Shown: piece after piece, positions 16,278 to 45,983 of the stretch | Layout: each line of letters opens with the position of its first letter | Position numbering within the stretch: position 1 is the first letter of the stretch | The notes under the pieces: model-generated | Seen by the model: the letters and a program-made list of their open reading frames with translations, nothing else | Databases searched by the model: none | Told to the model about the DNA's origin: nothing | Assembly: GCA_964187785.1 (NCBI GenBank) | Contig: OZ076415.1 | Location: 62,186,001-62,250,000, forward strand | Direction: 5' to 3' | From: Amphiscolops sp. MND2022 | Lineage: Eukaryota | Length of the DNA: 64,000 nucleotides | Translations under genes and position numbers: made by a program

Positions 16278-16429
16278 ATCCTTTTGAAAATACTACGTGT
16301 TAGATACCAAGTTTAATATAAATTTCTAGAACATATCGTTTTTATGAGAATACATATAACAACATGAAGTCTACTTGAAGTTCAGTGTACAAAATTGGAA
16401 TCGTATTTAAGTTGAAAAGAAAGAGTTCT

Positions 16430-16760
16430 TTCAGTGATGACGGCATCTGGAATAAAGTTTTGGAATGTTCCTGAGTCTATGAATACCACAGAAGTTCTAC
16501 TCGAAAAGTTAATGCGCGATCCGTAATAACTATCTCCCTATCAGTACCTTGACGAAGCTCATGTACGTTGTTCAAGTACAACCGAAATTGGGGAAATTAC
16601 CGCGCTCGATAAAAAACCTAATGAAAAATACTACGGTTTGGCTGCTTTCACTGATTTTAAAACCGCGTTTAACCCAATAGATCACACTTTACTTCACAAA
16701 GAGCTCAAAAAGTTTCAGTTTACGGATTAGGATTGAGAATTTTAGTGAACTTAGTGAAAG
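16430..16760 (+). pseudogene. LINE RT fragment related to the element at 616-3456
   Basis: DGIWNKVL and YYGLAAFTDFKTAFNPIDHTLL match DGISNKLL and HYGLAAFIDLKKAFDTVDHNLL of the intact ORF2, also at nucleotide level. Confidence 0.75.
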
Positions 16761-16829
16761 TTCGAAACTGAGATTAATGGAAAACAATACTTCTGCTGAT
16801 TTGTTCACATCGATGTGTGATGAAATTAC

Positions 16830-17408
16830 CTCGAACATTGTGTTCAAAATCCCTCGCTCAGTTCTGCGTCGAAGAATTTTTGCTCGGAAACTCGCAACCA
16901 AAGAGACAGCCGAGCACAGGATCACAAAATTGTACACAACTGTGAAAAGAGCATTGAGGAACAAGTTATAAGCCCGCACCAATTTGTCATCCAATGACGT
17001 CAATTCGCATTCATCTTCTTCCAACTTGAATAAAAACAAAATCGGGATGGAAACTATCAGGTTGAAAGCCGTGATCCAAACTGTGATTCTTTTGTTCAAC
17101 TTAGTCCAGTTTTTCTTATAATGCCATGTCGAAAACCTCATTGACACTGCTCTGTCTGTTGCAAAGACAGCCAGAAGAGAAGTTGTATTTCCCACCAGAA
17201 ACCACCACAAGTAACTGATGATCTTGCAAGCTACATCTCCCAGATAAGCTAGACCTACGTCACATATCTTCAAGGCGGTGATGGGAATGTTGAGTAAGAG
17301 GAAACAACTTTCCCAAGATGCAAGGAACCGCATCCAGATGGACCCAGAGGTGACAGGTAGGCCCAGAGAAGTGTCAATGATAAGAGTGTTCAGAATCAGA
17401 CCAGTGAC
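16830..17408 (-). CDS. Class A (rhodopsin-like) GPCR, segment encoding TM1-TM5
   Basis: Open frame VTGLILNTLII (TM1), SGSIWMRFLASWESCFLLL (TM2), ACKIISYLWW...FATDRAVSMRF (TM3 Cys and DRY-like), ITVWITAFNLIVSIP (TM4), ECEL (ECL2 Cys), YNLFLNALFTVVYNFVILCSAVSLV (TM5). Candidate acceptor CAACAG ending at 17409 and donor GAG|GTAATT at 16829. Confidence 0.75.
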
Positions 17409-18071
17409 CTGTTGAGATTATCAAACGTTGAAAAAACCCAATAATGTTGAAAAGTTTTGGGTATATCACCCGAAATTATACCCGTTTCTGAACGAGAAAA
17501 ATTCCCAGTTCAGTTCAAGGGTCCTTCTTTGCAGCATCTTGCAAGATTCCTTATAAGGTCATTATAAGATTCATTCAATGCGGCTAATTCTATTGCAAAA
17601 TCAAGGTAAGTAATGCTGTCTTTGCAAGGAACGTGTTAGCTGCTTTCAAAAACAGACATTTGGACCTTTGATACTAGGGTTACTACTGTACCTTCGCAGC
17701 TGAGGAAAACATTTGCCTGCATACATATCTGTGTTTGATGCATACAAAAATGGATTCTTCACAAAAATGGTTTTAACTGAATTGTCCATGCATCGGGTGC
17801 CAGTTGGCGAGCTGCGGTTTCGCTTTCTAATTCCAATTTTCAGTCAACCCATCTTGTGACAACGCAATGATTAAAAAACAGCTCAGTTATTAGGTAATGG
17901 GAAAATGATTGAAAGGTACAGTGTGCATTGAAATTAAACTTAACCATAAACCTAAACATTACATTTTATCTGATAAGTCGAAATTTGAACCTAAAATTGA
18001 AAAGAGTTCGTTTGTTGTGATATCCGAGTTTAACATTTTAGCCGCTCAGGTAGAGAAGTTTTGACATCAAA

Positions 18072-25964: not shown

Positions 25965-26345
25965 ATTATAATGTTTGGAAAAAACAATATGGTGCAATAG
26001 ATTTATGCTGTTTTCGAAGAAAAACAGCATAAACGTTTGAATATATGCTAAGTTAGACAAAAAACAGCAAGTGGAATTAAGGTATGTTGTTTTGAAAGAA
26101 AAACCCAAATAATGGAACGAATTCATGCTGGTTTACAAGAACAGCAGCGTAGAATATTGAACTCATGCTTTTCTGGAAGAAAAACAGCAAAGAATAATAA
26201 TTTCATTCTGTTTTGGAAGAAAAACAGCATAGCGGAATGGATTTGTGCTGTTTTGGACAAAAAACTGCATGAAGGAGACAAGAAAAAAGTTTGAATTTCG
26301 ACTAGAATTTATTTTATCTTATGCAGTTTTCTGAAGACAGCACAT
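25965..26345. repeat. Degenerate 40-bp tandem array with a 26-bp palindromic core
   Basis: Cores start at 25965, 26005, 26045, 26084, 26125, 26165, 26205, 26245 and probably 26321. Best copy ATGCTGTTTTCGAAGAAAAACAGCAT (26005-26030) has 10-bp inverted arms. Confidence 0.8.
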
Positions 26346-28700: not shown

Positions 28701-28849
28701 ATATGGCTAAAGGGATGCTCTCTCATAAGTTCAATACCTTTAATGAAAATGTACTTCCGTAGCATTAATACTTTTCATAAATAGGTTTTCATTGACTGCG
28801 CGAGCATTCAGGTCTCGAATCTAATTCTTGGTTGTTCGTAATTTTGTAG

Positions 28850-29996
28850 TGTCAGAACGTACGGACGTCTCAGAATTGTGTACGTCTCTGTAGTTCTCTT
28901 CCCTACTGTTTGACATTTTATCAGTAAGGGCTCTCACAATACTTGTTAGTTCGCTAATTTGTCGGTTCATTTCCATAAACCGTTGCTCAATTCTATGTTT
29001 TTCATGGTCGCGTTCAATCTCTCTCATACCATTCAACTCCTCATTTCCGTTAACATTTTCAGCAAAGTGATCGGCAACACTCATGTTGTCTTCATCTCCA
29101 GAGTACTCATTCGTTTCTTCTCGACTAAATCTGTTTTCTCTATTGAATCCTGATCGAGTATTAACCATTGTTTTAAAAGATACAAGTTGGTAAAATGTTT
29201 AAATTTGAATTGGTAAGTTTAATAAAATGAGCTAAGAGTTGTTAAAGTACGACTGTATTCCAAGGTGGTTAGTTCTACTGTCTGGTTTGTCCTAATTGTG
29301 GTAGCACCTTCAATCTCATAATTACTCGCTAATTGCACCTGAGTATTTGAGTCTCTTCTTGTTTGATTGTTTTAGTAGACCTGCCGTTAGCACCTTTGTA
29401 CGACTGGTCACTTCAGTCGTCACTAGTTACTATTTCGGTATTTCAACTCTAATGACACATTAGTATGCGTCGTTAATTTCACTACTTCACAGCACGAGTT
29501 AATGATTGAGGTTTTGCGTATAATTACTGCATTTGATTACTGGTAATACTTCTGTAATTAGCACTGAGTGTGGAATATGACTATCGTTTGGAGTCGTTTC
29601 TAGTGATTCTACAAGGTTTCACTGAAGGAATATTTTATGAATGATGCTAAATGAACTAAACGATGCTTTAGGGATGAATTGTTAAATGTTTAAATATGGC
29701 AAACTGCATGTATGTTTAAGTAAGAAAGGTACGACCAGATATGCCAGTCGTTTGTATAATTGCCCTAAAGGTTGCGTTAAAAAATATGTAAAGCGGAAAA
29801 TGCTTTTATGCATTTTACAGAACTCAAATTGCACTGGTAGTTTGTGGCATGAATGAAATTGGGATGACGACTTTGTAGTACGGTCGTCCATTATATGTAT
29901 TTACATGTATTCTAAACTGTTCATGATTTAGTGTTTTAGCTGATTGGGGAGGACTTCATCTCTCAGTCGTTGTATCTCATACCAACTGGTATAACA
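28850..29996 (-). repeat. 3' LTR (1147 bp)
   Basis: Aligns without gaps to 43215-44361 at offset 14365 (99.1% identity). Confidence 0.97.
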
Positions 29997-30010
29997 TTCC
30001 GCCTCTTTGA
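29997..30010 (-). promoter_or_regulatory. Polypurine tract
   Basis: Minus strand ...CAAAGAGGCGGAA directly precedes TGTTATACC of the 3' LTR. Confidence 0.8.
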
Positions 30011-30913
30011 AAAGAAATGAGAGCTGACGGGGGGGTGAAGTGGTGGGTAGCAGTAGGCGGGGTTGATCAAGCATTAGCTAAGTTACAGTTGTTTCGTAGG
30101 TGAAACTTTTCCTCACATGACGACTTCGGGTGGTAGTCGTCGATAAGTTGATGCAGCTATTGACCTACTGTCGAGTAATCGGAAGTAGAATCGGACTGTG
30201 ACGTCATGAGTATCTTCGTGTTGGGAAGTGAAAGTAATCAGTATTGAGTGGAATTCGGTATGCCACGTCATCCGGTCGTGCGCTTGATGAGAGTAATTCG
30301 TCGAGTTAAGTAAGTAGTGAAGGAGCGTTGGCCGCGGTAGTCGGCTCGTTCGCAGGAGAGTAAATACGTTTGATACAGAGAGTCGTGTATTCCGTTTTCC
30401 GTTTCCGTTACTCGTGCTTGAGTAAACAAATGGTCGCTGCAGTTGTTGTTGACTTCGAGCTCAATTGTCGTTAGCATCAGTGTTGATCAAACTTTTGTTA
30501 CTGGTCGTTGCTTGCTCAAATTCAAATTGGAATTCTTCGATTATTTTCCGGATATTGCTGTTCCCTGTTTATTTTGCTGCTTTGTTGTTCGAATTGCTTC
30601 GTTGATTAGCCTTACATCCTCTCATCACTTGTCCCTTTTGCGGTTGGGATCGAATATCTTCTAGTCTGATGCATTTTTTGTACGTGAAAGTAGGATAGGG
30701 AAAAAGAAACGACTGCTATGCTCGGAGGTAGATTTCTTCCGTTGATTTTTCTCTTGTTGTGATTTAAGTCAATCAGCATCACCTGTGGTGGTAACTTTTG
30801 AATACTGAAATACTAGTGATATTAGAGCATGTAGTTGATCAGGCCATATTCGATTTCACCAGAACTGATTTGTTGAGTCGTCTTCCACTCCTTATTCTAC
30901 TCTTTATCCCTGT

Positions 30914-33900
30914 ATGTCCGATCTTGGTGGTTCTTCCTTCGACCCTGATTTGTGGTCGCTTGTATCCCTCGCCGAGGAGATTTATCAGGAGATCGAAGAG
31001 ATGGCATCCGGAATAGATTCAACTTCCGAAGAGGCCTTAGCCGAAGGGGCTGCTACTGTACTGTCGCCCTGTTGCCAGTTTGCTGGGCGAGTGAGTTCCG
31101 CATCGCTGGGAGGGATGAGTGAGCTGCTTGAACTTGCTCTCTCCGAGGAATTCCGTAAGTACAAATCATTAGTTTTTCTTCTTCCGTAGTGGGTGGGGTC
31201 GTATGTGAGTGTTTGCAACACATACTTTGCGAGTCGTGAATTGTTTCTCGCCAATCATTTGCTCGAGGCTTTTCTATCTTTCTATGTTTTGTATTCTGCA
31301 TTGGTCGTCTAGACCCACTTGTCGATGTAGGACTGTGTTTTATCGTTGTGATGAGGGGGTGACTTCCTGCTTGTTTCTTAGGCAATGCTGAGATGCCGAG
31401 GTTACTCGAGTACGTCCGTGCCTTCCCACAGAGAGGAGGTCAAGCGAGTGTGTCCGCGCCAACTGTACTGAGCGATCAAGTGCACCAGTTAATGCAATCG
31501 CAGTTGGGTTAGTATTCTCGTGTTTGTTTCTTCTGGTTGCACACGCTTGTAAACTTCAAGTAACATGAGCGATCTCGGCTGCTGTAGTAACTTCAGTTCG
31601 ATAGGGAACTCTTTTTTTTTCAATCCGGGATAATCTAGAATGCTAGGTTGGTTTTCGTAGGTGCCGAAGACTGTGCTGTCTTGTCCTTGGACGATTTGCT
31701 GAGCCGGGTAGAGGCTCGCATGGACAAGAGCGTGAGAGAGCTGAGCAAGGCTATTCTCGAGTCGTCCTTGGGAGAGCTTGGCACTGTGGGGGCCTTGCGT
31801 GTGGAGGAGTTTTGGCAGACGTTCAGGGCTGCTCTTCAGGAGGTCGTTGCTAAGCGTCATGTGGATTCGGTTCCTCGAGTGTCGACGCCTTCTGCAGAAT
31901 TGCCGTCTTTGGAGCTGGCCAGTCATGGCACTGTCCCTGGATGCGGTGGTTCAGGAACTGGGTCATTCGTTCCAACTGTGTTCGGTGGTCCAGGATCAGT
32001 CGCTGCTCCTAGCGATCCTAGTGTTGGGACGTCTGTTGTTCCGAGACCTGGTAACTACTTTCAAGATCACATGTAATGTTATACTAATTGGGGGGTTAAT
32101 CTTAGTCTGATTAATTTTTTCTCGATGATTAGTTTATTTGGGGGTGGGTAATGTATTGGTGAAACGACCGTGTTTTCTGGTCATGGTAGTCAAGACTGGT
32201 GGTTGAACACGGGGGGGTGAAATTTCTCTTATTTATTTTTGTAGTGTGTTTATGTTTCGATTTTTCAGTGAGGAAGAAAAGGCTCAATACGCTGAAACCT
32301 TCCTATTTCGTTTCGAATGTAGTCGGACTGTTCGTTGGCTTCCCGCGTCACAAGCGCGTTATCGACGGGTTCGCGCGGTGCCTGATGTGTCGCGTCGATC
32401 TCAGTATAGCCGGACGAGGTCTCCAGAATCTCTGGGGACATTGGAAAGGTGCGGAGCATACGCGCTTAGAGCAGAAGTTCCGGATCATGACCCAACGCCC
32501 CTTACTTGACAAGTCATGTCGGCCAGTGTCCGCGGATGAGGACAAACGCATACGCCTGGAGAGGATGGTCGAGCCTCCAGTGTATTTGGAGTCTCCAATT
32601 AGTTTGTCCCTTGAGGAACGTGTTTCACTGGAGCGAGAAGTAGAAGAAGGTGCGCGGCCAGTTTTGTCGACAGCGAGTGCAGCTTATCTGTGGCTGTGTT
32701 TTTTCCTAAACTGTTTTGGTACTATCACTGGTTTCCAGTCGCTGATACGTCTGATGGATGGCTGGTCTGGCAGTATGAGCGGCGAGATGAACTTTGTGTC
32801 TCGGACTCTTTCTGTGCCCAAATGTCAGGTACCATAACGTTTTATGTGTGTTGTATTTACTTCTAGCTTTTTCACCGGGGGGGGGGGGTTACATGTTTTC
32901 CTTTTGTATGTTACATGTTGTTACTACTTATTTGTTGTGTGGTTGTTTTTCATGGTTTCTTTAGGTCGTTTTGTGTTGTTTAGAGCTTGCTGTTGTACGG
33001 GGTGTACCCTTACATTGTCGAAAAGATGGGCAATCTGTTGCAAACAGGCAGTCAAATAGGCTTGCGCGTCTATTTCGATGGCAATTTCTGGCGGGTTGAC
33101 TGCCATTTCGTCGACGACCTAGATGTGAAGTCTGTGACCTTAATAACTTGGCCTGTATGTGAGCAGTGGAAGGAAGAGCTAATCCGCCTGGCTATCACTA
33201 TTTTGTCGTGTCTGGAACCGTTACCTAGCTTGTGCAGTGTGGTCGTGGATACGCACCTCGCCGTTGGGCGGGCGTTGGCTCATTTTGGCCCTGGTGGCAA
33301 CTCCGTGGTCATGCGCGTTCATGATGTACAGTGGGTTCAGCGTGCTATTCGTCAGCAGTTTCGACAGCGGGTGGGCGGTCTGGACCCATACAATGTACTG
33401 GAGTTCTTAAAGTACCGCTTGTCGAGTGTTGTAAACGGTGCAGCTTTTGACAAGATGCCATTATTGCGTCAGGTACTTGCTTTTGCTTGTGTTACTACAT
33501 GTGTGTTTTTTGTGTTGAGTGGACTTTATTTAGTTTTTTTTTTGTTTTTTTTGTTTTACTTGTGATTGTCTTCTTGTCTAGGGCTGTGATGTTCAGTCTT
33601 TCTTTTGGCTTATGTTTGACTGAGTAACTATGGATTACGGGTGTTGTTTTTCGTTTTTGCAGTACGTGCGCAGTGACGACCTAACACTCCCTCAGTTGGC
33701 GGCTGTCTGTGGGGAACTTGTGGAGCGCTGGGACGATCTAGCTGTTTACTTCAGCAATGAAGGCAGTGGCTCTATGGTGGAGCTGAGATCTGTCCCAATC
33801 CTAAGCGTCGTGATTTTCAATGACCGATTGGCTAGACCGCAGATGGCCATGTTGAGGTGGTTGCTAGACGAAGGTTGGTAGTTTAATTTTGTGTTTTTTG

Positions 33901-35323
33901 AGGTTTTCGTCTGTTTTTTTTTGTTCGTTAAGTGTAGATGACTGTGGGTCGAAGTGTTCGTTTAGTCGTTTGCTTACGACAGTTGTATTTGCTATTCTCA
34001 GTGCGGGGTAGGGTCTATTTTTGTATTGAATGCATTATACTGTTAATGTGTGTTTTTGTTTTAGTCGTAGCGTCTCTTCCTCGGGGGTGTACGTACAGTC
34101 GAGACCGAGATCTGAGCTTCGAAGTGGAGTTTGTGTCCTTCCTTCGACGACTGAGGTGTATGGTCCAGGATGCGGACAAGATCCCAGCTGCTTATGACCA
34201 TGAACGTCTTCTCAGCACTAGGCCTGTTGAATTAGGAACTTTGTCTCAAGAACGTTACCAAGCGCTGTTTGTGCAGTATTTTCGCTTCGACGTGCGTGAT
34301 CAACAACGTGTTTTCTACCGCGAGATCCAGTTGTTTTTGGCAAAACTCTGTGAAGACCTAGTAGCCGAGTATCAAACTGATGCTGAAGGACGATTGAATG
34401 TAACTGCTTTCGCTCCCGAGGCAATGTTCTATCGATCAAAAGACCGTGTGGTTGACGCACTTATGGATTGCTGTTTGTTGCTAACGCGCTTGGGATTTCT
34501 CGGTGATGTTCAAGGCGCCAAAATCGTCCAGCAGTACAACGATGTGTATAGCTATTTTATGCATCGATGGCGAAGCCAATCGTCTTCTGGTCCTGTGGTT
34601 GATGACGTGATAAACCTATGGCGGGCCTATCCCTTCTGGTCGCGTTGCAGTGACTTGCTGTGTGTCTTCAAAGTTGTGGTCTGCTGTACTACCCGAAGTC
34701 AGTATGTGGCTGATTTCTTGGATGTTGGGTCCACTGCTCTTTCTCAAGGACAGTTGTTGTCCAGCATGAATCTGGTGAGGAGTTGGACAAGCTCTGGCGT
34801 TATTGGTGGTGCTCGCAAACTCATGGCTGGTTTCCTTCGTCATTGCGAGACGACTGATATGCATGTCTCTCGGCTGATGGATCCCGAAAGAGGAAGACCG
34901 TGGGATCAACTGTTGAAAGTTGGGGTCGAAGACGTGCTGGCTCGGTGTTACCGAGTGTTGAACGAAGGAACTGTTAGACCTGCAGGAATTTCAGTTGACG
35001 AGTATCGGTCTGCAGTTTGCGAACAGTTAAAGAGCGGTTCGGATGATGCGATTGGTCAGCTTAGAGATCGTTCGCGGAATTCTGCCTCTAAAGGGTCTGC
35101 CTTACAATTTTCTGTCTGTGATGATGAACCACTAATTCGTCACGTTTCCAGTAGCAAGCGACCTACGTCTCAGAAGGACGTTAGTTTGCCGTCGACATCC
35201 CGTTGTGTTAAAGGAAAAAAGAAGTCTGCTGGTGTTAAGCCTAAGACAGTTGTGCCGCCTAAGAAGTCCTACAAGCGGAAGTTAACGAAAGTCCTCATGA
35301 GTGAGTCGTCTGAGGAATACTAG
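30914..35323 (+). CDS. Seven-exon antisense cargo gene, 1091 aa: BED-type zinc finger + hAT-transposase-like body lacking most catalytic motifs
   Basis: Exons 30914-31154, 31382-31507, 31661-32050, 32269-32828, 32984-33472, 33663-33873, 34065-35323 total 3276 nt = 1092 codons with no internal stop. Six GT-AG introns of 153-227 nt (donors GTAAGT, GTTAGT, GTAACT, GTACCA, GTACTT, GTTGGT; T-rich acceptors). CLMC...HWKGAEH finger at 32379-32458. hAT-like blocks RVYFDGNFWRVDCHF, SVVVDT, LVERWDDLAVYF, FYREIQLFLAKL, DLLCVFKVVV. Confidence 0.85.
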
Positions 35324-35335
35324 TCAGTTGGAGGA

Positions 35336-35341
35336 AATAAA
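35336..35341 (+). terminator. Polyadenylation signal of the cargo gene
   Basis: AATAAA 12 nt after the TAG stop, followed by T/GT-rich sequence. Confidence 0.6.
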
Positions 35342-37038
35342 AACATTTTGTCATTGCTTGTTGAAGAAAAACAGTTTCAGCTGTTTACATGATTTGTACT
35401 TGAAAAACTTTACTTACAACTTAGGTTTCACTTTTCTCTTGTGGGCATTTTTACATGTCTTTTTGTGTTACTACTTTGCATCCTGTATATTTTCATTGTA
35501 TGTTGTTGTTTTATTGCTGATGCTGGGCGATTTGTTGGATTTGCTTTTTTACTGTGCTGTTCTTTGCATGTTTTTGCATGGTTGTTTTGAGCTTTTGACA
35601 ATTGTTACATGTTTTTAGTTACTTAGATCGGTACATCTTGTGTGTATCTTCCTTCTTGCGGGCACGGATAGTATTTTCAGTGTGTCCAGAAACAGAAAAT
35701 ACAGTCATTGACTTAAAACGTTCTTTTGTCCTAGAGTAGAGCTCTGCAGGTAGTGTGGTTTTCAAACATATCGGCTATCATTTTTCTTCGGTGTAGTTGG
35801 TGACTGCTCGAGCATGGTAACGAGACGCTTGTACCATGGCTCTTTTGGCCTAAGCACTGCATTGCAAAGTGGGTGACTGGGCAGCTTGCTCATTCCAATG
35901 CTTGAACGTCCAAGGAGTGCACCCTTGGTTTAAGACTTAACTTATTCAGCGTGTGATTTTGTTTACATGTGTTTTTTTTCCTCTAATGCCTAAGTTGCAT
36001 GTTTTTACTGTTCTTATTACATTACATGAAATTTTTCGTTTGTAATGACGTCATCATCGTTGGTGTGTGTCTTGTGACGTCACCACTCGTGATGTGTGTC
36101 ATTTTTGTTGAGACTTTTGGAAATGTTACGTTATGGTAATGACTATGGCTGGCGGGCTGTAGTTGACTATTGTTTTTAGTCGTGTTCGCGCTGAAAATTA
36201 TTTTCGAGGGTAAGGCCACGAACTCCTTAAATTTTTGTCAAGGCGAGGCAAAGCCTACGCATTTTTGGTTGGTTTAAGGGGTCGGGCGTTCATGGTTTTA
36301 TTGTTGTTGGCCGTCCGCTTTTTTTGTGTTTTTCTTTAGCAATGTTCGGTTTATTGTAAGGTGAATTGCCGTCGCAACCACCCATTCAAAACTAACACTG
36401 AATCCAGTTGCTAAAGAGCAACCTTCATCTGTATGTTGACGACCAACCACACAAGCACGTTTTTTGACGACGCACCCACACAGCCAGCTCTATGATTTCA
36501 AGGTTAAACGAGAGGGGCTTAGTTGCGTTGTCTTAACGTTGGCGGGGCAGCAGATCGTTCCTGTTAGTTTGTTGTGCGTGTTGGGAACGTTATTTGCGTT
36601 CACGTTTCATTAGTTGGATTGGAATAGTTCCAGATTCAAGATATTTTACTAGTACTGTGGCTATGGTAATTTTGGCGTGAATTGCATAAATTATCTCGCG
36701 TTAATTCGTGTGGTACATGTATTTCCGCATCGCACTTTTTATGACGACTAGTGTTCGCCGTCGTTGCGTTTCCGTCCGTTCATTCTTAATGGCAGTTAGC
36801 GTTCAATGATAGTTTAGCTCGCATCGTGTTGACTGGAAGTAATGATTGTTTGATTAGTTGTTTTCTAGATTGAGAGTGTTTGGTGAGTACTGTAATTGTA
36901 AAACAATTACCTTCAAGTTTTATAAGTGTGACTATCATGACTGCTATTAGCAGTCGTTGGTGGTGTTTTTCAAGATTACTAAGCTACGAAAAGGGAAGTT
37001 GTATTTCTAGTGTGATTTAGGAGACTTATGAACGACTT

Positions 37039-40000
37039 TCAGTGTAAGTTGTTGTTTTGTAGAAATTTTTGTAAGACAGGTTTTACTTGAAGTTCATGCA
37101 CTAAGAAATCTCGGTACGTTTTCGGTGCAGGTTGTGGCCTTAGATTGTACCGGGTGGTGTTGTTGCGTGACGTAACCGGCGCTTCGTCGTTATTGTTTGG
37201 CAGCTCGTGTTCGTGTGTTGCAGATTGATCAGGTTCATCCTGATATTCGTCGTCTACTCGCGCGCTAACGACTGAGTCGTCAGTTGGTGGCACGAAAATT
37301 TGGGGAGGATGTTCAGTTATTGGTTGTGTTTGTGATCGGTCTGACGACCTTTGAGCATAGTCGTAGTAGATAATACCGTGTTCGGTATCGATTTCTTCAG
37401 GTAGTGGCAATGCGGGTGTTTGTTCAAAATGTATGGTCTGAGGTAAGTGGTCGTTGAACATGTCTTGGTCATCGAAAGCTTCAGGGTCGGCAAAGAAGAG
37501 ATTTGGATCTTCTTCGATGTCGGGTATAGGTGCGTTCCGGATGAAAGGTCGTAAACGCATTCTGTGAACGCACTGTGTGCGGGAAGTGCCGATTTTCCTC
37601 ACTATGTAGTTGAAATTAGTTAAAACTTTTACTACTTTGAAAGGGCCTTCCCATTTAAAGTGGTGGAATGCGATTTTGTCGGACTGGTCGGTGATTTTCG
37701 GGTTGAGGAGGAAGACGAAGTCATTAACTTTCAACGGTGATGCTTGAGCCTTACGGTCGTAGTACCTTTTGTACTTGTGGTAAGCTTGGAGTATGTTATC
37801 GTTTACTTGTTTGTACTTTTCGTTTACTTGGTCAATCAACTTCGTCAAATCAGTGTCTTGTGTGCGGCATTGTAGGGGGTTGCTGAACTTAAGGTCTAAG
37901 GCGTTGAACGGGACTCTACCATGAAACACTTCGCTCGGGGTACACTTAAGTGATTGGTGGTAGGTCGTGTTATGAGCCATAACTGCTAAGTTAACGTACT
38001 TGTCCCATTGGGGAGAGTCAGCTGCAACATTGATTTTCAGTATCTGTTTTAGCTTTTGGTGGGAACGTTCGACCATTCCTATGGTTTGAGCATGTTTTAC
38101 AGTTGCGTGTTCGATTTGGATTCCGGCAGTTTTCATTAGTTCGGTCATGATGTTGGCTGTGAATGCTGTTCCTTTGTCAGTGATGATGGTCTTGGGTACG
38201 TAGGCGTGACGAGTGAAGATTTGTAACAGTGCATTGACTACTGATTTCGTGTCTGGTTTGCGGATCGGGATAGCGAACAGATAGCGCGAGAAATAATCGC
38301 ACGCCGTCAGAATGTGCGTATATCCGTTTGAGTAGGGTAGTTCACCTACCAGGTCGATTTCAAGTATATCTTCTGGACCGTTGCAAGGGTCATAGATTTT
38401 TTCGAGAGGTGGGGTTAGACGTTTTGGGTTGACAGGTTTAGCTTTTAGGCAGTCTGTACAGTTGCTAACAAAGTTTGAGACGTGTTCACTGAGGTTAGGT
38501 ATATAATAACGCTTGCGGAGTTCTACCAACATTTTGGTTGCCCCAGGGTGTCCCTGCATGGGATCGCCATGCATCGTCCTGATTATGGGCAACGTAGTTT
38601 CTGGAGGTACTACAATTTGTTTAAATAGAACTCTACCAGTGTTATCGAAAAACTTCCTGTACAGTACGTTGTTGACTACTTCAAGGCGTTTCTTGTTTTT
38701 TACAAGTTTTTGAAAGAAAGAGCTAGCAAAGTTTACGTGGTTAGGGAGGGGTTCGTCGTTAACTAGGACTCGGACCATTTTTTGGATGTCCTGGTTACTT
38801 AGTTGGTCCTGGAATATTTGAGAATTCCCTTGCGGGCATACCTGGTTTACCATGTTGGGGTGTTGTTTTCTGGTAAACTTCGTCAGTATGATTGAGGGGG
38901 TTTCGCCTGCTAGCACTGGCTCGAGGTGACGACTGATGATCTGGATCATCTTGGTTCGGTCATCGTCATGTTGATCCTGGGTGTTCGCGAGCAGGTGCAG
39001 TAGGGACTGCATTTGGTTGAGTGCGTCATTGGTGTCGTTTGTTTCAGGGTGATTCTGCTCCTGGGACTCATTTGGCTTGGCGTCTTGTGGTTGATCAGGG
39101 TCGTAGTCTTCTTCATCATCATCTTGTTTCGGGGTTTTTGCAGCTAAGTCGATTTCGATGTAGTGGACAGGGATCTGGTCGTTGAGTTTCAAGTGTATTC
39201 TGTCCTCAGGGTTGATGTCGAGCCTAGACAGGTAGTCGGCGGCTGGATTTTCTACTCCTGGCACGTGGGCTAATACGAAATCGAATTGCAGAGCCTGGTC
39301 GCAATGGTTCCACAATTTCGGTGGAATTCGCTTTGATTGGAAAAAGCGGGTTAGCGCTTTGTTGTCCGTCATCACGATTGTGGGTTTCTTGACTCCCCAT
39401 AGTATGTGGGCGAATTCATCGAAGGCGAAGTGCATGGCTAAGAATTCCTTCGCGTATATAGTCAATGACATTTGACCTTCGGTGAATCGTTGGGATCCAA
39501 AGGCGACGGGTGCATACGTCTTCTTCTTCTCGTCGTTGTTCTCGGTGTAATCTTCAATGAGTAGCACGTATCCTGCTGCGTGCTCGCTGGCATCGCACAT
39601 GATGACGAGTTGTTTGTCGGGCAGTGGCAATCTGAGTGACAGTTTTGCTGCTCGTGCTAAATTTTCATTTATGTCAAAGATCGCATCCTTGTGTACTTGT
39701 GTCATTTCGAATTTCACATCTTTTTGTAGAAGTTTGTACAGTGGGACTAGCTTTTCGGCCAATTTCGGGATGTATTGTCTATAAAATTGGACGAAACCGA
39801 TGTAACGTTGCAGTGATTTTACTGATGTTGGAAGTTTGAGTTTTTTGAGGAAGTCATCAATTCGTTTTTCGAGAGGTGCAACGCCTTTAGTTGTTATGCT
39901 ACGTCCCAGAAATTCGATCTTCGGGTTTCCGAAAGCGCACTTTGACATCGAGAGTTTCAGCCCTGCTTTCTGGATCTGCTGGAACACTGCTTCGATGTTG

Positions 40001-41985
40001 GCAACCAGTTCGTCCACGTTGTGTGCAGCTACCCCAATATCGTCGACGTATTGTGCACATTTATCTGCTTTCACTAGTGCATCAAGATACTCGCGGATTG
40101 TGCTGTTAAATGCTGAAAGTGATCTATTCAATCCTTGAGCGAGACGGAGGTATGCGAAGGTTCTGCTGCCAAAATTAAATGCGAGGAGCTGGATTGACTG
40201 TTCATCGGCCATCTGAAGGCAGTGGTAAGCTTGTGAACAGTCGAGCTTACAGAAGTACTTCTTGCCAGCCATGTGTTGAGCGGCGTCTGCTATCGTCGTG
40301 ACCGGGTGATTGTGCTGGTTGTAGTCGTTCTTGAGGAGGTGGTTGATGCGTCTCAAGTCGACTAGGATTCGCAATTTTCCATTGGGCTTCCGCTGGGCTA
40401 ATATCGGGGACGAGTATTTGCTGTATGGAAGTGTGGTGATGATGCCGTATTCTTGCATCAGAGCCAATTCGACGAGGAGGTCGTCCTTCAGGTTAGTCGG
40501 GGTCGGTAGGCTCTGTGCGTACACCGGGTCGTCATGTTTGGGTGTCAGTTTAATTTTGAAATCGGTGTTTATGCCTATGTCGAGGCGGTGACGAGCAAAA
40601 ATCGTGTGGTATTTGACCAATAAGGCTTCGATCCGCTGTTGTTCTTGTTCGGTGAGGATTGAGTCGTCCCAGCTGAAGTTCTTCAGGAACGTCCTTCGTT
40701 GGTCGTCGTCACGTGTAGGGTCAAGTTTCTCAGCTTCACGGAGTTGGATAATCTCATCGTAAATACGGCGTTCGATTTTGTTGAGTTTTTCAGGATCGTC
40801 GCATGTTTCGGGTGATGGGTACCATCTTTTGTCTTTACTTGCGTCTGGTTCTTGAAACAGCTGATTTATGACATTGGTGGCTTCATCTGGGAATTTTGTG
40901 ATGAGTGTTAGTTGTTCACTTGTCATTGGTTGAACATTTTTTGCTTGGTTTGGAGTTAAGATGCGGAAGACTGCCACTGTTGTGTTTTGGGGAATCGTTA
41001 TTGAATGGTCCAAATAGTTGGTGATTTGGACGTGTGTCTGCTGGTCGTTGATCTCGGACATCGATGGGGACACTAGAAGTTCCGTCTTGCGTTCGAAAGC
41101 TGGGAATGCCTCTACCGTGCCTGTCACTTGGCCGATGTCTTTTTCTGATGTCACCGGAATGAAGACTTGTTGTCGTGGTTGTATTGTCGTCTTCTGTGAT
41201 GCTCTGAGTTCCAACATCTGCAATTTGAATTTCCCATTTTGTGGTCTCAACTGAAGTGTAATTTCGGGAAATCTAACGATGTTATTTGCAAGGTCCAGGG
41301 TTACGGAATATTTCTTGAAAAATGACATTCCAATCAATATGTTTCCCATTGTCGGTAAGATCATGAAAGTCTCTTCAAAGACTTTTCCTCCGATAAAGAA
41401 CCGAAGGAGGACTTGCTTCCGGACTGGAACTATACTTCCGTTAGCAATTTGCACTTTGAAGTCCGGAGCAGGGTACTCTTCAAGTTGGGCCGCTGGGTGG
41501 GCTTGTAATATTCGGCGTAGTTCGTTTTCGGACATTGCGCTTTGGATAGCCCCTGTGTCTAGCAGTCCTTGATTTTCATATGCTCTGAAATGGAGGGGGA
41601 CGTAGAGCATTTTGTTTCTTTTGTCTAGCTGGAGTGTTGCAGTGAGAGGCTTGATGTTTGTCGTCTTCGGGTTATTTGACGACTTCACTTGTGGTGGGTG
41701 TTTCGAGTCTCGTTTTGCTGGTCGGGTAGTCATTTCGCTAGTTCGTGAGTCCCTTGGTTCACAGTCCTTTGTTGTACATGAAGGGTCGTCTCCAACTAAC
41801 GGGAGAATGTGGTAGTTGTTATGTGACACTTTATGTACATAGTATTTCTTGGGTAGTTTAGTCTGGGGGACAGAATGCTGCCGACATTCTGGCGTGTGAG
41901 TCTTCGAGTCGTAGTAGTGGTTGATTTGTGGTTGTTTGCGCGCACTGTTGGTCTGGGTGTGTTGGGGATGACGTGGCTTTACAAG
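37039..41985 (-). CDS. pol: Gypsy pol (protease, RT, RNase H, integrase), intact; probably entered by -1 frameshift
   Basis: Frame is open from 41985 to the stop at 37039. PR LLDTGA; RT KLDCSQAYH, YVDD; RH CDAS; IN HGDPMQGH...CTDC, EIDLVG, ITDKG, ERSH, WEGPF. Confidence 0.96.
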   Translation of the reverse strand, partial: LVKPRHPQHTQTNSARKQPQINHYYDSKTHTPECRQHSVPQTKLPKKYYVHKVSHNNYHILPLVGDDPSCTTKDCEPRDSRTSEMTTRPAKRDSKHPPQVKSSNNPKTTNIKPLTATLQLDKRNKMLYVPLHFRAYENQGLLDTGAIQSAMSENELRRILQAHPAAQLEEYPAPDFKVQIANGSIVPVRKQVLLRFFIGGKVFEETFMILPTMGNILIGMSFFKKYSVTLDLANNIVRFPEITLQLRPQNGKFKLQMLELRASQKTTIQPRQQVFIPVTSEKDIGQVTGTVEAFPAFERKTELLVSPSMSEINDQQTHVQITNYLDHSITIPQNTTVAVFRILTPNQAKNVQPMTSEQLTLITKFPDEATNVINQLFQEPDASKDKRWYPSPETCDDPEKLNKIERRIYDEIIQLREAEKLDPTRDDDQRRTFLKNFSWDDSILTEQEQQRIEALLVKYHTIFARHRLDIGINTDFKIKLTPKHDDPVYAQSLPTPTNLKDDLLVELALMQEYGIITTLPYSKYSSPILAQRKPNGKLRILVDLRRINHLLKNDYNQHNHPVTTIADAAQHMAGKKYFCKLDCSQAYHCLQMADEQSIQLLAFNFGSRTFAYLRLAQGLNRSLSAFNSTIREYLDALVKADKCAQYVDDIGVAAHNVDELVANIEAVFQQIQKAGLKLSMSKCAFGNPKIEFLGRSITTKGVAPLEKRIDDFLKKLKLPTSVKSLQRYIGFVQFYRQYIPKLAEKLVPLYKLLQKDVKFEMTQVHKDAIFDINENLARAAKLSLRLPLPDKQLVIMCDASEHAAGYVLLIEDYTENNDEKKKTYAPVAFGSQRFTEGQMSLTIYAKEFLAMHFAFDEFAHILWGVKKPTIVMTDNKALTRFFQSKRIPPKLWNHCDQALQFDFVLAHVPGVENPAADYLSRLDINPEDRIHLKLNDQIPVHYIEIDLAAKTPKQDDDEEDYDPDQPQDAKPNESQEQNHPETNDTNDALNQMQSLLHLLANTQDQHDDDRTKMIQIISRHLEPVLAGETPSIILTKFTRKQHPNMVNQVCPQGNSQIFQDQLSNQDIQKMVRVLVNDEPLPNHVNFASSFFQKLVKNKKRLEVVNNVLYRKFFDNTGRVLFKQIVVPPETTLPIIRTMHGDPMQGHPGATKMLVELRKRYYIPNLSEHVSNFVSNCTDCLKAKPVNPKRLTPPLEKIYDPCNGPEDILEIDLVGELPYSNGYTHILTACDYFSRYLFAIPIRKPDTKSVVNALLQIFTRHAYVPKTIITDKGTAFTANIMTELMKTAGIQIEHATVKHAQTIGMVERSHQKLKQILKINVAADSPQWDKYVNLAVMAHNTTYHQSLKCTPSEVFHGRVPFNALDLKFSNPLQCRTQDTDLTKLIDQVNEKYKQVNDNILQAYHKYKRYYDRKAQASPLKVNDFVFLLNPKITDQSDKIAFHHFKWEGPFKVVKVLTNFNYIVRKIGTSRTQCVHRMRLRPFIRNAPIPDIEEDPNLFFADPEAFDDQDMFNDHLPQTIHFEQTPALPLPEEIDTEHGIIYYDYAQRSSDRSQTQPITEHPPQIFVPPTDDSVVSARVDDEYQDEPDQSATHEHELPNNNDEAPVTSRNNTTRYNLRPQPAPKTYRDFLVHELQVKPVLQKFLQNNNLH

Positions 41986-41991
41986 TTTTTT
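41985..41991 (-). promoter_or_regulatory. -1 ribosomal frameshift heptamer A AAA AAC
   Basis: gag frame reads TCA AAA AAC TTG TAA; a -1 shift enters the pol frame, which has no stop between 41985 and 41829. Confidence 0.75.
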
Positions 41992-43200
41992 GAATTCTGG
42001 GTGAATTCTTCATTGTAATCCTCGTCGTAGCAATCGTTCTGGCCTTCTGTCTGTGTTGTTTCACTTGTTGCCTGGGCTACGTAGTAGGGTTGCTGTCGTG
42101 TGTTCTGCGATTGGCGGAGGTCTCGTCTGAATTCGCGGTTCTCCGTTGTTGACTGCTTCTGGTAAGGTACATTCTGGTAGGCTGATGCACCTGGCACGCG
42201 GTCTCGGCAATCTCGTGCAGAGTGTCCGACCTTGCCGCAGATTTGACACACCAATTTTGGGTTATATCGGGTTTTGTCAGTCTGGGGTTGTTGGTTGTTG
42301 CTATCTTGTTGAGGGCGTTGATAGGTTTTGGTGTGGATTCCGTTTGATTCATCCCGGAGGCGTTTTCGGCAGTCAATCCACTTGTGACCAACTATGTTGC
42401 AATATCTGCAATTGCCTTCGAATTTTCGTTTGACTTCTTTATTTGCATTTGGTTTCGCCGCGTTGTTGCTGGTGGAAGTCGTCTGTTGGTTTGTTTATTG
42501 TTTGGCAGGGTAATTCTGAATGTTGTTCAGAGGCTGCATTCCCGCGTTGTTCGGTATCAGTTGTGCGTACTGGCAACGTCTCTGAACGAAGGTCTTGATT
42601 TCTTCGCTGGTAGCGTCGTGCTTTCCTGCCATCGCTAATTCATTTTGTATCTGGATTGGCAATTTGGCAAATAAGAAGGTTTCTGCTATGTCGTTTGCTT
42701 TTTCACCGTACGCCTGTTTTGCCAGCTTTTTAAACTTCGTCAGGAAGTCGGCAAATGACTCCGTTGTCGGGTCGTACCTCATTTGATCGAACTTGTACTT
42801 CGATACTTCTTTGAGGTCTTCTTTGGCGTATTCCTTGCTGAATGCCTGGAGTATGTCGGTGAGTGTTGTTTCGGTTGTTATTTTCAAAGTTTGCCAAAAT
42901 TCAATGGCGTCGTCCCTGAGTAAGCTTTGGAAGTAATTTAGCTTCTGTTCTTCCGTCAATTTGTGCATGTGGGGCCGGAGATGGTTTTTGAGTAAGTGTT
43001 CAAACTCGTTATATTTCTCTCGGTTCCCACGGAATAGAGGGACTTGTGTTTGGAGTTTTTTTTGGCTGGATCACTCCATCAACCATTGTTGTTCTGAGGT
43101 GCTGTATTTCGGACATTACGTCTCCCATCTGTGGGTCGAGCAGTGAAGGTGGAGTTCTTCTTGGCGGTTGGGTATTGGGTGTCGGCGGTGGGTTCGCCAA

Positions 43201-43214
43201 GACTCCTGTCACCA
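43201..43214 (-). promoter_or_regulatory. Primer-binding site TGGTGACAGGAGTC (tRNA-Leu-like), inside the gag ORF
   Basis: Starts at the base after the LTR-terminal CA; one mismatch from the tRNA-Leu-type PBS TGGTGTCAGGAGT. Confidence 0.7.
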
Positions 43215-44361
43215 TGTCAGAACGTACGGACGTCTCAGAATTGTGTACGTCTCTGTAGTTCTCTTCCCTACTGTTTGACATTTTATCAGTAAGGGCTCTC
43301 ACAATACTTGTTAGTTCGCTAATTTGTCGGTTCATTTCCATAAACCGTTGCTCAATTCTATGTTTTTCATGGTCGCGTTCAATCTCTCTCATACCATTCA
43401 AGTCCTCATTTCCGTTAACATTTTCAGCAAAGTGATCGGCAACACTCATGTTGTCTTCATCTCCAAAGTACTCATTCGTTTCTTCTCGACTAAATCTGTT
43501 TTCTCTATTGAATCCTGATCGAGTATTAACCATTGTTTTAAAAGATACAAGTTGGTAAGATGTTTAAATTTGAATTGGTAAGTTTAATAAAATGAGCTAA
43601 GATTTGTTAAAGTACGACTGTATTCCAAGGTGGTTAGTTCTACTGTCTGGTTTGTCCTAATTGTGGTAGCACCTTCAATCTCATAATTACTCGCTAATTG
43701 CACCTGAGTATTTGAGTCTCTTCTTGTTTGATTGTTTTAGTAGACCTGCCGTTAGCACCTTTGTACGACTGGTCACTTCAGTCGTCACTAGTTACTATTT
43801 CGGTATTTCAACTCTAATGACACATTAGTATGCGTCGTTAATTTCACTACTTCACAGCACGTGTTAATGATTGAGGTTTTGAGTATAATTACTGCATTTG
43901 ATTACTGGTAATACTTCTGTAATTAGCACTGAGTGTGGAATATGACTATCGTTTGGAGTCGTTTCTAGTGATTCTACAAGGTTTCACTGAATGAATATTT
44001 TATGAATGATGCTAAATGAACTAAACGATGCTTTAGGGATGAATTGTTAAATGTTTAAATATGGCAAACTGCATGTATGTTTAAGTAAGAAAGGTACGAC
44101 CAGATATGCCAGTCGTTTGTATAATTGCCCTAAAGGTTGCGTTAAAAAATATGTAAAGCGGAAAATGCTTTTATGCATTTTACAGAACTCAAATTGCACT
44201 GGTAGTTTGTGGCATGAATGAAATTGGGATGACGACTTTGTAGTACGGTCGTCCATTATATGTATTTACATGTATTCTAAACTGTTTATGATTTAGTGTT
44301 TTATCTGATTGGGGAGGACTTCATCTCTCAGTCGTTGTATCTCATACCAACTGGTATGACA
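43215..44361 (-). repeat. 5' LTR (1147 bp)
   Basis: Minus strand runs TGTCATACC...TCTGACA, immediately followed by a TGG PBS. Confidence 0.97.
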
Positions 44362-44917
44362 TGTAGAGTTGATGATCTAACAGTCAATGACTTTATGTTC
44401 GTAGTCTAGTCGTCGCTGATGCATAGCGAGTTTCAATTTATGGCAGGCAGACTCTTTTCGCTACAGATGATTAGTGGAGTTAGGTAAGGTGTGAAGTATT
44501 TTTTGAAGTCAACAATTTCTTATCTTGAATCATCCGGTGAGTTGTAGAGAGCATAGAGAACAAATTCCAATTTGTTGAGATTTACGAAACGTGCTACACA
44601 GCAATCAAGTTACTGCAGTTGTTTGGAAACAATGGTGTTTTTTCACGACCAACAAAGAACCTCTGTGACCTCATACTCTTCGCTTGTCTGCATACTTGAT
44701 AGAATTTATTCTCGTTAAATTGTTCTTCAGAGTCTTCCACACTCGCATCCAGCAACGTCTCAAGACAGCAAAAGGCACTATAATGACTCAAAAGTGCCGC
44801 ATTTAGGAACTTGTATCATCGTTCTGTTTTCCAAAGACTTCGAGTGTTCAGTAGGAGCATGATTATGTAAAATAGTTAGTGAATTTTGTAAAACTGTAGG
44901 ACTTTCTTCCTATATTT

Positions 44918-45983
44918 AAAAGTTGAGAGTCCCGTATTCATAGGTCTCTCCCAACACGCTGTCATCCGTTGTACGTAAACATTTTATGCGTTTTGTCTTA
45001 ACAGCAAATAAGAAAAGGAAGTTCTCTTTTTGAGTTCAGTTCACTTTTTCAAAATTTTTTGCAAGTAGTGGGCATATTTCGTATTTTATGTTGTGAAGGA
45101 AAACAGGACAGTTTTTGATTTCTGTATTGTATGTCTCTGACGAATATTCCAAGTCTCCTCAACACCTTGACGTTAGTATCACTGCTAACGTTGTTAAGTA
45201 TCTCCTTCACCAATTGTTGGGACAAGTATTCGTATTCCTTTTTTTCCAAGAAGCTCAGGGATCTCAAACTATCAGACATGTTAAGATATCATTGTTCAAT
45301 ATTTGCTTCTACTCTGGTGTCAGCGAAGCTCTCCTTATGAAAATGTGTCAACGTTTTTTACCAATAATTTGCGGGATTTCGTTTGACTTTTTTTCAGGAC
45401 ACTTTCATATATTCGTCAAATTTTTGTAATTCAATGAAGTTAGTTTCACCTGCAGTGTGCAGGTTAAAAAAGTTGAGAGTCCCGTATTCATACGTCACTC
45501 CCAACACGCTGTCATCCTTTGTACGTAAACTTTTTTTGCGTTTCGTCTCAACAGCAAATAAGAAAAAGATGTTCTCTTTTTGAGTTCGGTTCACTTTTTC
45601 AAAACTTTTTGCAAGTAGTGGGCATGCTTCGTAATTTGTGTTGTGAAGGAAAACAGGACAGTTTTTGATTTCTGTATGTCTCTGACGAATATTCCAAGTC
45701 TCCTCAACACCTTGACGTTAGTGTCACCGCTAACGTTGTTAAGTATCTCGTTCACCAACTGTTGGGACAAGTATTCGTATTCCTGTTTTTCCAAGAAGCT
45801 CAGGGATCTCAAACTATCAGACATGTTAAGATATCATTGTTCAATATTTGCTTCGTTTGCTATGAAAATGTGTCAACGTTTTTCACCAATAATTTGTGGG
45901 GTTTCGTTTGACTTTTTTTACAGGACACTTTCATATATTTGTCAACTTTTTGTCATTCAATGAAGTTAGTTTCACCTGCAGTG
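44918..45983. repeat. Tandem duplication of a ~540-bp unit (44918-45457, 45468-45983)
   Basis: Both units begin AAAAGTTGAGAGTCCCGTATTCATA and end TGAAGTTAGTTTCACCTGCAGTG, and give near-duplicate minus-strand ORFs MSDSLRSLSFLEK... Confidence 0.9.

Follow-up and report, generated by a model that had tools for sequence, protein, structure and literature searches.

An intron-bearing antisense gene, putatively derived from a hAT transposase, in a lineage of Ty3/Gypsy retrotransposons

The retrotransposon and its antisense gene

The stretch of DNA analyzed here, referred to as the window (64,000 nucleotides (nt) of contig OZ076415.1, assembly GCA_964187785.1), contains a Ty3/Gypsy retrotransposon which carries, in addition to gag and pol, a multi-exon gene encoded on the opposite strand and referred to below as the cargo. 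The carrier is a Ty3/Gypsy long terminal repeat (LTR) retrotransposon in which the paired LTRs, the target-site duplication, the polypurine tract, gag, and the expected pol order are all present (Table 1). Self-BLAST identified a long direct repeat in the window, linking positions 28850-29997 and 43215-44362 (1148 nt, 99.1% identity), and the LTR pair that it defines differs by 10 mismatches over 1147 bp, ends in TG..CA, and is flanked by the 5-bp duplication CTACA. The pol product displays Pfam matches to gag-asp_proteas (88-173), RVT_1 (480-642), RT_RNaseH (737-843), Integrase_H2C2 (1074-1132), rve (1151-1243), and Integrase_p58_C, that is, the protease-reverse transcriptase-RNase H-integrase order that characterizes Ty3/Gypsy elements. 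In gag, however, comparison by tblastn with the intact, single open reading frame (ORF) of a homologous locus, L004, whose gag product is 513 amino acids (aa) long, revealed a frameshift near 43061 and an in-frame stop codon at 42497-42495, upstream of the two CCHC knuckles. The window copy is therefore probably non-autonomous, although its LTRs are 99.1% identical and its pol and cargo ORFs are intact. An earlier reading of the window, made from the letters alone (the sequence-only reading), had described the carrier as a young Gypsy element; this copy is indeed young but, with its broken gag, not intact. It is of note that the LTR includes the gag start codon, which is placed 319 nt inside it (43215-43533, and 28850-29168 in the 3' copy, minus strand), so that the first ~106 gag codons are encoded by the LTR itself, and that the 3' LTR accordingly holds a 115-aa ORF copy of the start of gag.

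The cargo gene lies entirely between the pol stop codon (37039) and the 3' LTR (28850-29996), within an interval of about 7 kb, and is antisense to gag-pol. Its exon chain was rebuilt independently, and the seven exons join into 3276 nt, corresponding to 1091 codons and a stop codon, through six GT-AG introns of phases 1,1,1,0,0,1; every junction conforms to the AG-exon-GT pattern and displays a pyrimidine tract. The exons have a GC content of 51.7%, while the introns, of 153-227 nt, contain 34-42% GC and 39-55% T. Both the frame of 1091 aa with its six phase-compatible introns and its antisense location between pol and the 3' LTR, as proposed in the sequence-only reading, were thus recovered. 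The latter had also pointed to an AATAAA downstream of the gene, and this hexamer is indeed present 13 nt past the stop codon; it is, however, absent from L001, a copy that is 97% identical, and from five other families, and since it is not conserved it was rejected as a marker of the 3' end of the gene and carries no weight as evidence for it.

Table 1. Coordinates of the retrotransposon, its antisense cargo gene, and the adjoining spacer (positions refer to the window; LTR, long terminal repeat; ORF, open reading frame)
Feature	Positions	Strand	Basis
Ty3/Gypsy element, whole, 15.5 kb	28850-44361	minus	LTR alignment and Pfam
5' target-site duplication CTACA	44362..44366	minus	flanks read directly
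5' LTR, 1147 bp, TG..CA; gag start codon inside at 43533	43215..44361	minus	self-BLAST, alignment
gag (Retrotrans_gag, two CCHC knuckles), broken	41982..43533	minus	Pfam, tblastn with L004 gag, translation
pol ORF, 1596 aa	37039..41829	minus	ORF list, Pfam
Spacer between pol and cargo, including invariant block 36358-36487	35793..36733	minus	blastn against L002/L004, alignment A6
Cargo exon 7: conserved all-alpha region, Lys/Arg-rich tail, C-terminal SSEEY, stop	34065..35323	plus	alignment A1, AlphaFold2, composition
Cargo exon 6, 70 codons	33663..33873	plus	exon chain and homologous loci
Cargo exon 5, 163 codons, RNase H-like; Asp471 after beta1, Asp528 after beta4	32984..33472	plus	AlphaFold2, Foldseek, alignment A4
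BED-like finger C290-x2-C293-x16-H310-x5-H316 (in exon 4)	32379..32459	plus	at least 90% conserved in 52 clusters
Cargo exon 4, most conserved: basic patch, CCHH finger, helical linker	32269..32828	plus	alignments A3, A7; 115 protein clusters
Cargo exon 3	31661..32050	plus	exon chain and homologous loci
Cargo exon 2, 42 codons	31382..31507	plus	weak homologues at the same position in L004, L002, L012
Cargo exon 1, ATG, acidic/Ser-rich N-terminus, donor GTAAGT	30914..31154	plus	homologous exon in L001, L002, L004, L009
Polypurine tract AAAGAGGCGGAA, abuts 3' LTR	29997..30008	minus	direct reading
3' LTR, 1147 bp	28850..29996	minus	self-BLAST, alignment
3' target-site duplication CTACA	28845..28849	minus	flanks read directly

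Conservation of the antisense gene across families

Homologues of the cargo were studied in 14 loci (L001-L014) taken from three ENA assemblies, namely ERZ25074608, ERZ26859043, and ERZ23498975, the last of which is a marine-biofilm metagenome and the source of L011. A search with the exon 7 ORF identified 17 protein clusters, at identities of 97% down to 36%, while exon 4 retrieved 115 homologous clusters; many cargo clusters have 30-80 members, and the homologues as a whole span 97% to about 21% identity. When 1.84 billion representative proteins were searched with a profile, 201 matches were returned, and the 150 listed are all ORF-sized fragments of at most 439 aa, among which neither an annotated full-length homologue nor a recognizable hAT was found. 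In the window, in L001-L010, in L013 (which has two copies), and in L014, the cargo is located downstream of a Gypsy pol's 3' end, in antisense orientation, and the distance that separates the two is about 1.7-1.9 kb wherever the contig reaches far enough. These pol-linked loci come from ERZ25074608 and ERZ26859043; the contig of L011 is too short to reach pol, and L012 is rearranged.

The exon-intron layout is preserved along with the position. Exon lengths are kept to the codon (186-187 aa for exon 4, 163 aa for exon 5, and 69-70 aa for exon 6), and the flanking AG and GT sites occur at homologous positions in families that are about 40% identical. Two such loci, L002 and L004, offer a GT-AG option at all six junctions, with the same 1,1,1,0,0,1 phases as the window, in addition to an in-frame ATG at the expected place. 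Even in L011 the boundaries of exons 5 and 6 are conserved, at only about 21-32% identity, and exon 5, which is about 22-25% identical there, still measures exactly 163 codons. The same position, orientation, and intron pattern are therefore found in more than 10 loci, including families whose pol is only 73% identical. Since position, orientation, exon lengths, and intron phases are shared across diverged families, the antisense gene is a heritable module of a whole Gypsy lineage and not the product of a one-off capture; the presence of the cargo, with the same introns, in other genomic copies had been put forward in the sequence-only reading as a check, and is observed.

Evidence of selection points in the same direction. 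Between L002 and L004, cargo exons 4-7 (785 codons) yield non-synonymous and synonymous divergences (dN and dS) of 0.050 and 0.68 and a dN/dS ratio (omega) of 0.073, while for pol (13264-18033 region) dN is 0.015, dS is 0.22, and omega is 0.071. With an omega of about 0.07 for both, the cargo is under purifying selection and is as constrained as pol, in keeping with the earlier expectation of a dN/dS below 1 across copies. The cargo omega of 0.33 between the window and L001 (dN 0.012, dS 0.035) rests on 20 synonymous and 22 non-synonymous changes only, as expected for young copies. The dS of the cargo is threefold above that of pol in the L002/L004 pair, whereas between the window and L001 no cargo excess is found (0.035 for the cargo, 0.053 for pol). 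The absence of an excess in the latter comparison suggests that modular recombination, rather than a higher mutation rate in the cargo, swaps pol and cargo between families.

These data also bear on an alternative in which an independent class II element would have inserted into this single copy, a host gene would have been transduced into it once, or the ORFs and splice sites would have come together by chance. The a priori frequency of nested insertions is the only point in its favor, and the idea is exceedingly improbable in view of a position, orientation, and intron set that recur in more than 10 loci, in other assemblies too, next to pol genes of only 73% identity, of an omega of 0.07, and of the fact that no homologue outside a Gypsy context was found among the 1.84 billion representative proteins (150 listed of 201 matches). 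Chance is excluded by the conservation of the seven-exon layout across families together with strong purifying selection. A nested hAT element, for its part, is excluded by its constant position across families and by the lack of terminal inverted repeats (TIRs): neither TIRs nor an 8-bp duplication were detected around the cargo, where the only inverted repeats are short, imperfect, and do not flank the gene. A separate insertion, with TIRs and an 8-bp target-site duplication of its own, was among the arrangements that would have spoken against the sequence-only reading, and no flanking TIRs were found; a co-opted gene would be expected to lack them, and their absence makes an autonomous nested hAT less likely.

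The regions that adjoin the gene differ in their conservation. The spacer between cargo and pol is about 69% conserved at the nucleotide level between families, and holds no ORF longer than 65 aa. Within it, between the cargo and pol stop codons, a block of ~130 nt (36358-36487) is 100% identical between families whose pol proteins are ~27% different, and an exact 23-mer from this block occurs in 9 of the 14 loci. A structured RNA at this site is unsupported, as the predicted folding of the block does not surpass that of shuffled sequence (z -0.86), and a search of the whole window, block included, yielded no Rfam matches. The block may represent a cis-acting DNA or RNA element, and the cargo protein possibly binds there. 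Also conserved between families in this spacer (alignment A6) are two motifs of the TGACGTCA-like, CRE type, namely GTGACGTCAC and GATGACGTC, at about 36040-36090. On the other side of the gene, the ~0.9 kb between the 3' LTR and the cargo ATG displays no nucleotide-level conservation between families.

Domain organization and relationship to hAT transposases

From its N- to its C-terminus, the cargo protein presents an acidic/Ser-rich region, a basic patch with a CCHH finger, an RNase H-like domain, ~330 conserved helical residues, and a basic tail. In terms of composition, the N-terminal third is acidic (35 D/E vs 16 K/R), the finger module is basic (16 K/R in 78 residues), and the C-terminal tail, with 13 K/R in 36 residues (1046-1081), resembles a nuclear localization signal, in agreement with the ~250-aa acidic/Ser-rich extension and the basic tail that had been described previously. 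Domain-level evidence was obtained per exon.

Exon 4 is 60-65% identical between families whose exon 7 is about 40% identical, and encodes a basic patch and, after it, FVGFPR.KRVIDG.ARC..C.VDLSIAGRGL.NLW.HWKG.EH. In the finger, the two Cys, the two His, and the flanking aromatic residues are at least 90% conserved in 52 protein clusters, and both the C-x2-C-x16-H-x5-H spacing and the upstream aromatic motif fit the BED pattern. When a deeper exon 4 profile was compared with the PDB, the third-best match was to human ZBED2 (2djr), whose BED finger aligned in register, though not significantly (E 1.8). Profile searches were otherwise negative: no zf-BED or any other Pfam family was matched at E<=1 by the six raw cargo ORFs, relatives of exon 5 (23 sequences) and exon 7 (48 sequences) gave no Pfam family at E<=10, only scattered single chance matches, the TRP28/Transposase_28 domain (PF04195) was detected neither in the cargo ORFs (E<=1) nor in the exon 5 and exon 7 relatives (E<=10), and sequence-profile searches of the PDB with exons 4, 5, and 7 produced nothing significant. 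By these searches, the cargo protein is an orphan at the sequence level. Of the BED-type finger of the sequence-only reading, near-invariant CCHH residues with BED spacing are observed, while Pfam gives no zf-BED match and the link to ZBED2 stays at E 1.8.

Exon 5, modeled by AlphaFold2 with a 23-sequence alignment (mean pLDDT 80.2), adopts the order helix, beta1, beta2, beta3, alpha1, beta4, alpha2, beta5, alpha3, which corresponds to an RNase H-like fold. In a Foldseek comparison with 350,542 PDB chains, ranks 1-7 are all occupied by the Hermes hAT transposase (4d1q, 8sjd, and 2bw3 among them), with E values of 5e-4 to 1e-3, a probability of 1.00, TMq of 0.42-0.48, and 150-160 of 163 columns aligned. 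Other RNase H-like folds, including those of UvrC, Pelota/eRF1, RuvX, poxvirus resolvase, and human immunodeficiency virus (HIV) integrase, follow at E 1e-3 to 8e-3 with TMq of 0.25-0.38. The exon 5 domain is thus RNase H-like in its model and structurally closest to Hermes, by a match of moderate strength. Exon 7 was also modeled by AlphaFold2 and is predicted to be all-helical, with pLDDT of about 80-90 at exon residues 20-210, an overall value of 60, and poor values beyond residue 210; in a Foldseek comparison with the PDB, this model, which is weak past residue 210, gave no match at E below 1, and no Pfam match to the hATC dimerization domain (PF05699) was obtained for the 48 exon 7 members. 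As modeled, the succession of finger, helical linker, RNase H core, and long helical region is that of hAT transposases, the structural match being to the core. The collinear hAT blocks previously recognized by eye, and the Foldseek comparison with hAT structures suggested at the time, therefore find support in the Hermes-like fold of exon 5, but not in sequence profiles, nor in the C-terminal half of the protein, which matches nothing.

An origin of the RNase H-like domain outside the hAT superfamily has to be weighed at this point. The gene would then still be a conserved accessory gene, but its core would have another source, such as a different DDE transposase superfamily for which no structure has been solved, a retroelement RNase H or integrase that was duplicated, or a nuclease of the host, and its finger would be of a generic C2H2 type. 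Although no Pfam or PDB sequence-profile match ties the cargo to hAT domains, and although the Hermes TM values reach only 0.42-0.48 with other RNase H-like folds close behind (E 1e-3 to 8e-3), it is Hermes that takes ranks 1-7 with the highest TM, ahead of integrases and all other such folds, and its alignment covers 150-160 of the 163 residues, flanking helices included. In the same manner, exon 7 is unmatched and no hATC domain was detected in it, yet the domain order is that of a hAT transposase, and the finger combines BED spacing with an upstream FVGF, an LW.HW pattern, and an in-register alignment to ZBED2. Such an origin consequently appears unlikely, though it is the most serious competitor to descent from a hAT.

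The residues expected to support catalysis are poorly preserved. Asp471 (RVYFDGNFW) closes beta1 and Asp528 (SVVVDT) follows beta4; the model hence displays a full core, and contradicts the earlier proposal that the strand carrying the first catalytic Asp had been deleted and that only SVVVDT survived. Across families, D prevails at the first position, L011 has E, and single members have C/N, A, or G, while the second is D, G, S, or E, with an acidic residue there or next to it in all aligned families. The place of the hAT CxxH is occupied by a conserved xxDxxW, and in the family alignments no catalytic Glu, Glu-bearing C-terminal motif, or RW motif could be placed, in accord with the disappearance of CxxH, RW, and the catalytic Glu noted beforehand. 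Given the absence of CxxH and the variation at the second Asp position, loss of catalysis is likely, and the description of the transposase as 'dead' is plausible, as judged from the alignments. The opposite view, in which the protein would still be an active nuclease or transposase that moves the element by cleaving target or donor DNA, making of it a true class I/class II hybrid, can draw on the acidic beta1 residue of most families (D, or E in L011), on the acidic residue at or next to the beta4 position in all those aligned, on the invariant Asp residues of exon 7, which include the motif TTDMQVSRL.D, and on selection as strong as that on pol. It is nevertheless quite improbable, since some members have C/N, A, or G in place of the beta1 Asp, the Asp of beta4 is shifted or replaced, CxxH is absent, no Glu-bearing hATC motif was detected, and the ends of the element are standard integrase products (TG..CA with a 5-bp, not an 8-bp, duplication) with no TIRs.

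A number of observations weigh against the interpretation of the cargo as a hAT-derived module of the lineage. No Pfam or PDB sequence-profile link joins it to any hAT domain, and the match to Hermes is moderate (TM <0.5, E about 5e-4) and comes from the model of one isolated exon. Exon 7 (418 aa), the expected site of the hAT insertion and dimerization domains, matches nothing and is weakly modeled, and the DDE triad, CxxH, and RW signature are not kept. In L011, the 1.7 kb upstream (1-1738) contains no CCHH/BED-like finger exon, only a very acidic ORF, and in this family the finger may be absent or lie further upstream. Lastly, the unequal dS of pol and cargo in the L002/L004 pair (0.22 vs 0.68) indicates histories that are partly decoupled. 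Set against the Hermes-like core, the finger, and the domain order, these points still leave it probable that the cargo module descends from a hAT-type (BED plus DDE) transposase.

Proposed role and comparison with known systems

The best overall explanation, to which we assign a probability of roughly 0.6, is that of a lineage-wide antisense gene, derived from a hAT transposase, whose product would act as a nuclear, DNA-binding accessory factor. The introns of an antisense gene read CT..AC on the sense genomic RNA and are not spliced from it, and for this reason the six introns of the cargo survive reverse transcription; their presence in every family fits such survival through the sense genomic RNA. 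The protein must consequently come from a separate, plus-strand transcript, which could start within the 3' LTR or in the ~0.9 kb that separates it from the ATG. The acidic N-terminal third, the basic finger module, and the basic tail suggest a nuclear DNA-binding factor, and the hAT-derived module would, in such a role, no longer need the hAT catalytic signature. The protein might recognize specific sequences on the element's own copies and be needed for propagation, candidate roles being the control of LTR transcription or silencing, or the tethering of integration. Dependence of the element on the cargo can be inferred from the fact that the latter is multi-exonic, constrained like pol, and spread over many families and hundreds of copies. 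A broader proposal, which we put forward only tentatively, is that these elements form an undescribed, deep metazoan clade of Gypsy retrotransposons, defined by a hAT-derived, intron-bearing antisense gene that the retrotransposon has domesticated, and on which it would depend for anti-silencing, LTR control, or integration targeting, possibly through the adjoining 130-nt block.

Other mobile elements are also found in the window. An intact-looking LINE ORF of 946 aa, with APE endonuclease and reverse transcriptase, occupies 616-3456 (plus strand), and a Copia-type pol fragment (Pol_BBD, rve) is located at 61949-63406 (plus strand). Direct repeats at 4768-5635 and 9855-10723 (93.8% identity) look like the LTRs of an older element. 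Outside the Gypsy element, tandem or dispersed repeats at 25980-26269 and 44918-45983 include 40-nt-spaced, AAAAACAGCA-type repeats, and the same set comprises a ~545-bp duplication (90-97% identity) immediately past the 5' LTR. A 214-aa ORF at 16689-17333 (minus strand) is the sole feature that resembles a host gene, and has a weak match to the rhodopsin family of G protein-coupled receptors (7tm_1), whose E value of 1.3e-6 falls slightly short of the Pfam cut-off. Together with the APE-type LINE, the Copia-like element, and the marine-biofilm source of one relative, this ORF hints at an animal host.

Antisense accessory genes of LTR elements are known mainly from plants. Retand ORF4 (TRP28/Transposase_28), gene23 of maize Grande, and the corresponding gene of rice RIRE2 are antisense ORFs (aORF-3R) of Tat-lineage Ty3/Gypsy elements, and most plant antisense ORFs encode a TRP28 domain, some of the proteins being nuclear (PMC11963269, PMC7264820). 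As in Retand, Grande, and RIRE2, the accessory gene described here is located between pol and the 3' LTR and runs antisense to gag-pol, in a lengthy stretch separating pol from the 3' LTR; also as in plants, all or most copies have it, diverged families included, and a nuclear or DNA-binding nature is predicted or shown for the proteins. The differences are nonetheless substantial. The host of the present carrier is probably a marine invertebrate, and its cargo is unrelated in sequence to the plant ORFs, having neither TRP28 nor any other Pfam domain, but rather a BED-like finger and a Hermes-like RNase H fold. It is also divided into seven exons by six conserved introns, whereas introns are unmentioned in the reports on the plant genes (PMC11963269, PMC7264820).

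With hAT transposases (Hermes, Ac, Tol2) and their derivatives (ZBED, Daysleeper), the cargo shares the order of a CCHH finger of BED pattern, a helical linker, an RNase H-like core, and a region predicted to be all-alpha and, like domesticated hATs, it has neither TIRs nor 8-bp duplications. It departs from the family in that it displays no similarity to the zf-BED, hAT RNase H-like, or hATC profiles, lacks CxxH, and does not keep the DDE triad; it also carries an additional N-terminal region of ~250 aa, and its recipient is a retrotransposon and not the host genome. If descent from a hAT holds true, a transposase would have been co-opted by another class of transposon, and not by a host.

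Retroviruses offer a further parallel. HBZ of human T-cell leukemia virus (HTLV) is encoded in antisense, exists in a spliced form, and is a nuclear regulator of both viral and host transcription (PMC11963269). Like the cargo, HTLV-1 HBZ, HTLV-2 APH-2, and HIV-1 ASP are antisense genes, on the minus strand of the provirus, and they are transcribed from its 3' end, but they are short, have at most one intron, overlap sense genes or the LTR, and encode bZIP or unrelated proteins, none of which is transposase-like. In the role proposed above, the cargo protein would be analogous to the aORF proteins of Retand and Grande and to retroviral HBZ.

In animals, precedents are found in the ORF3 position, and are not described as antisense. 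ORFs located there are typically expressed by way of splicing of the transcript of the element itself. In bdelloid rotifers, LTR elements carry, downstream of pol, an ORF3 that is env-like or encodes a GDSL esterase or a DEDDy exonuclease (PMC5408684). These elements resemble the present ones in that animal LTR elements gain and keep, downstream of pol, ORFs of an enzymatic or accessory nature, and in that modules are exchanged between families; they differ in that the domains are unrelated, ORF3 is not described as antisense, a term which in that report is used for small-RNA reads only, and introns are unmentioned (PMC5408684). Literature searches retrieved neither a spliced antisense gene in an animal Gypsy element nor a hAT-like gene in an LTR element, which agrees with the earlier impression that such a gene was undescribed in an animal Gypsy element. 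The arrangement reported here is thus a variant of the antisense accessory ORFs known from plant Gypsy elements, which are its closest described form and yet are different from it. Its conserved introns provide a natural marker of transmission only through sense genomic RNA and, if the gene does descend from a hAT transposase, it should offer a tractable system in which to address what antisense accessory proteins do for the retroelements that carry them.

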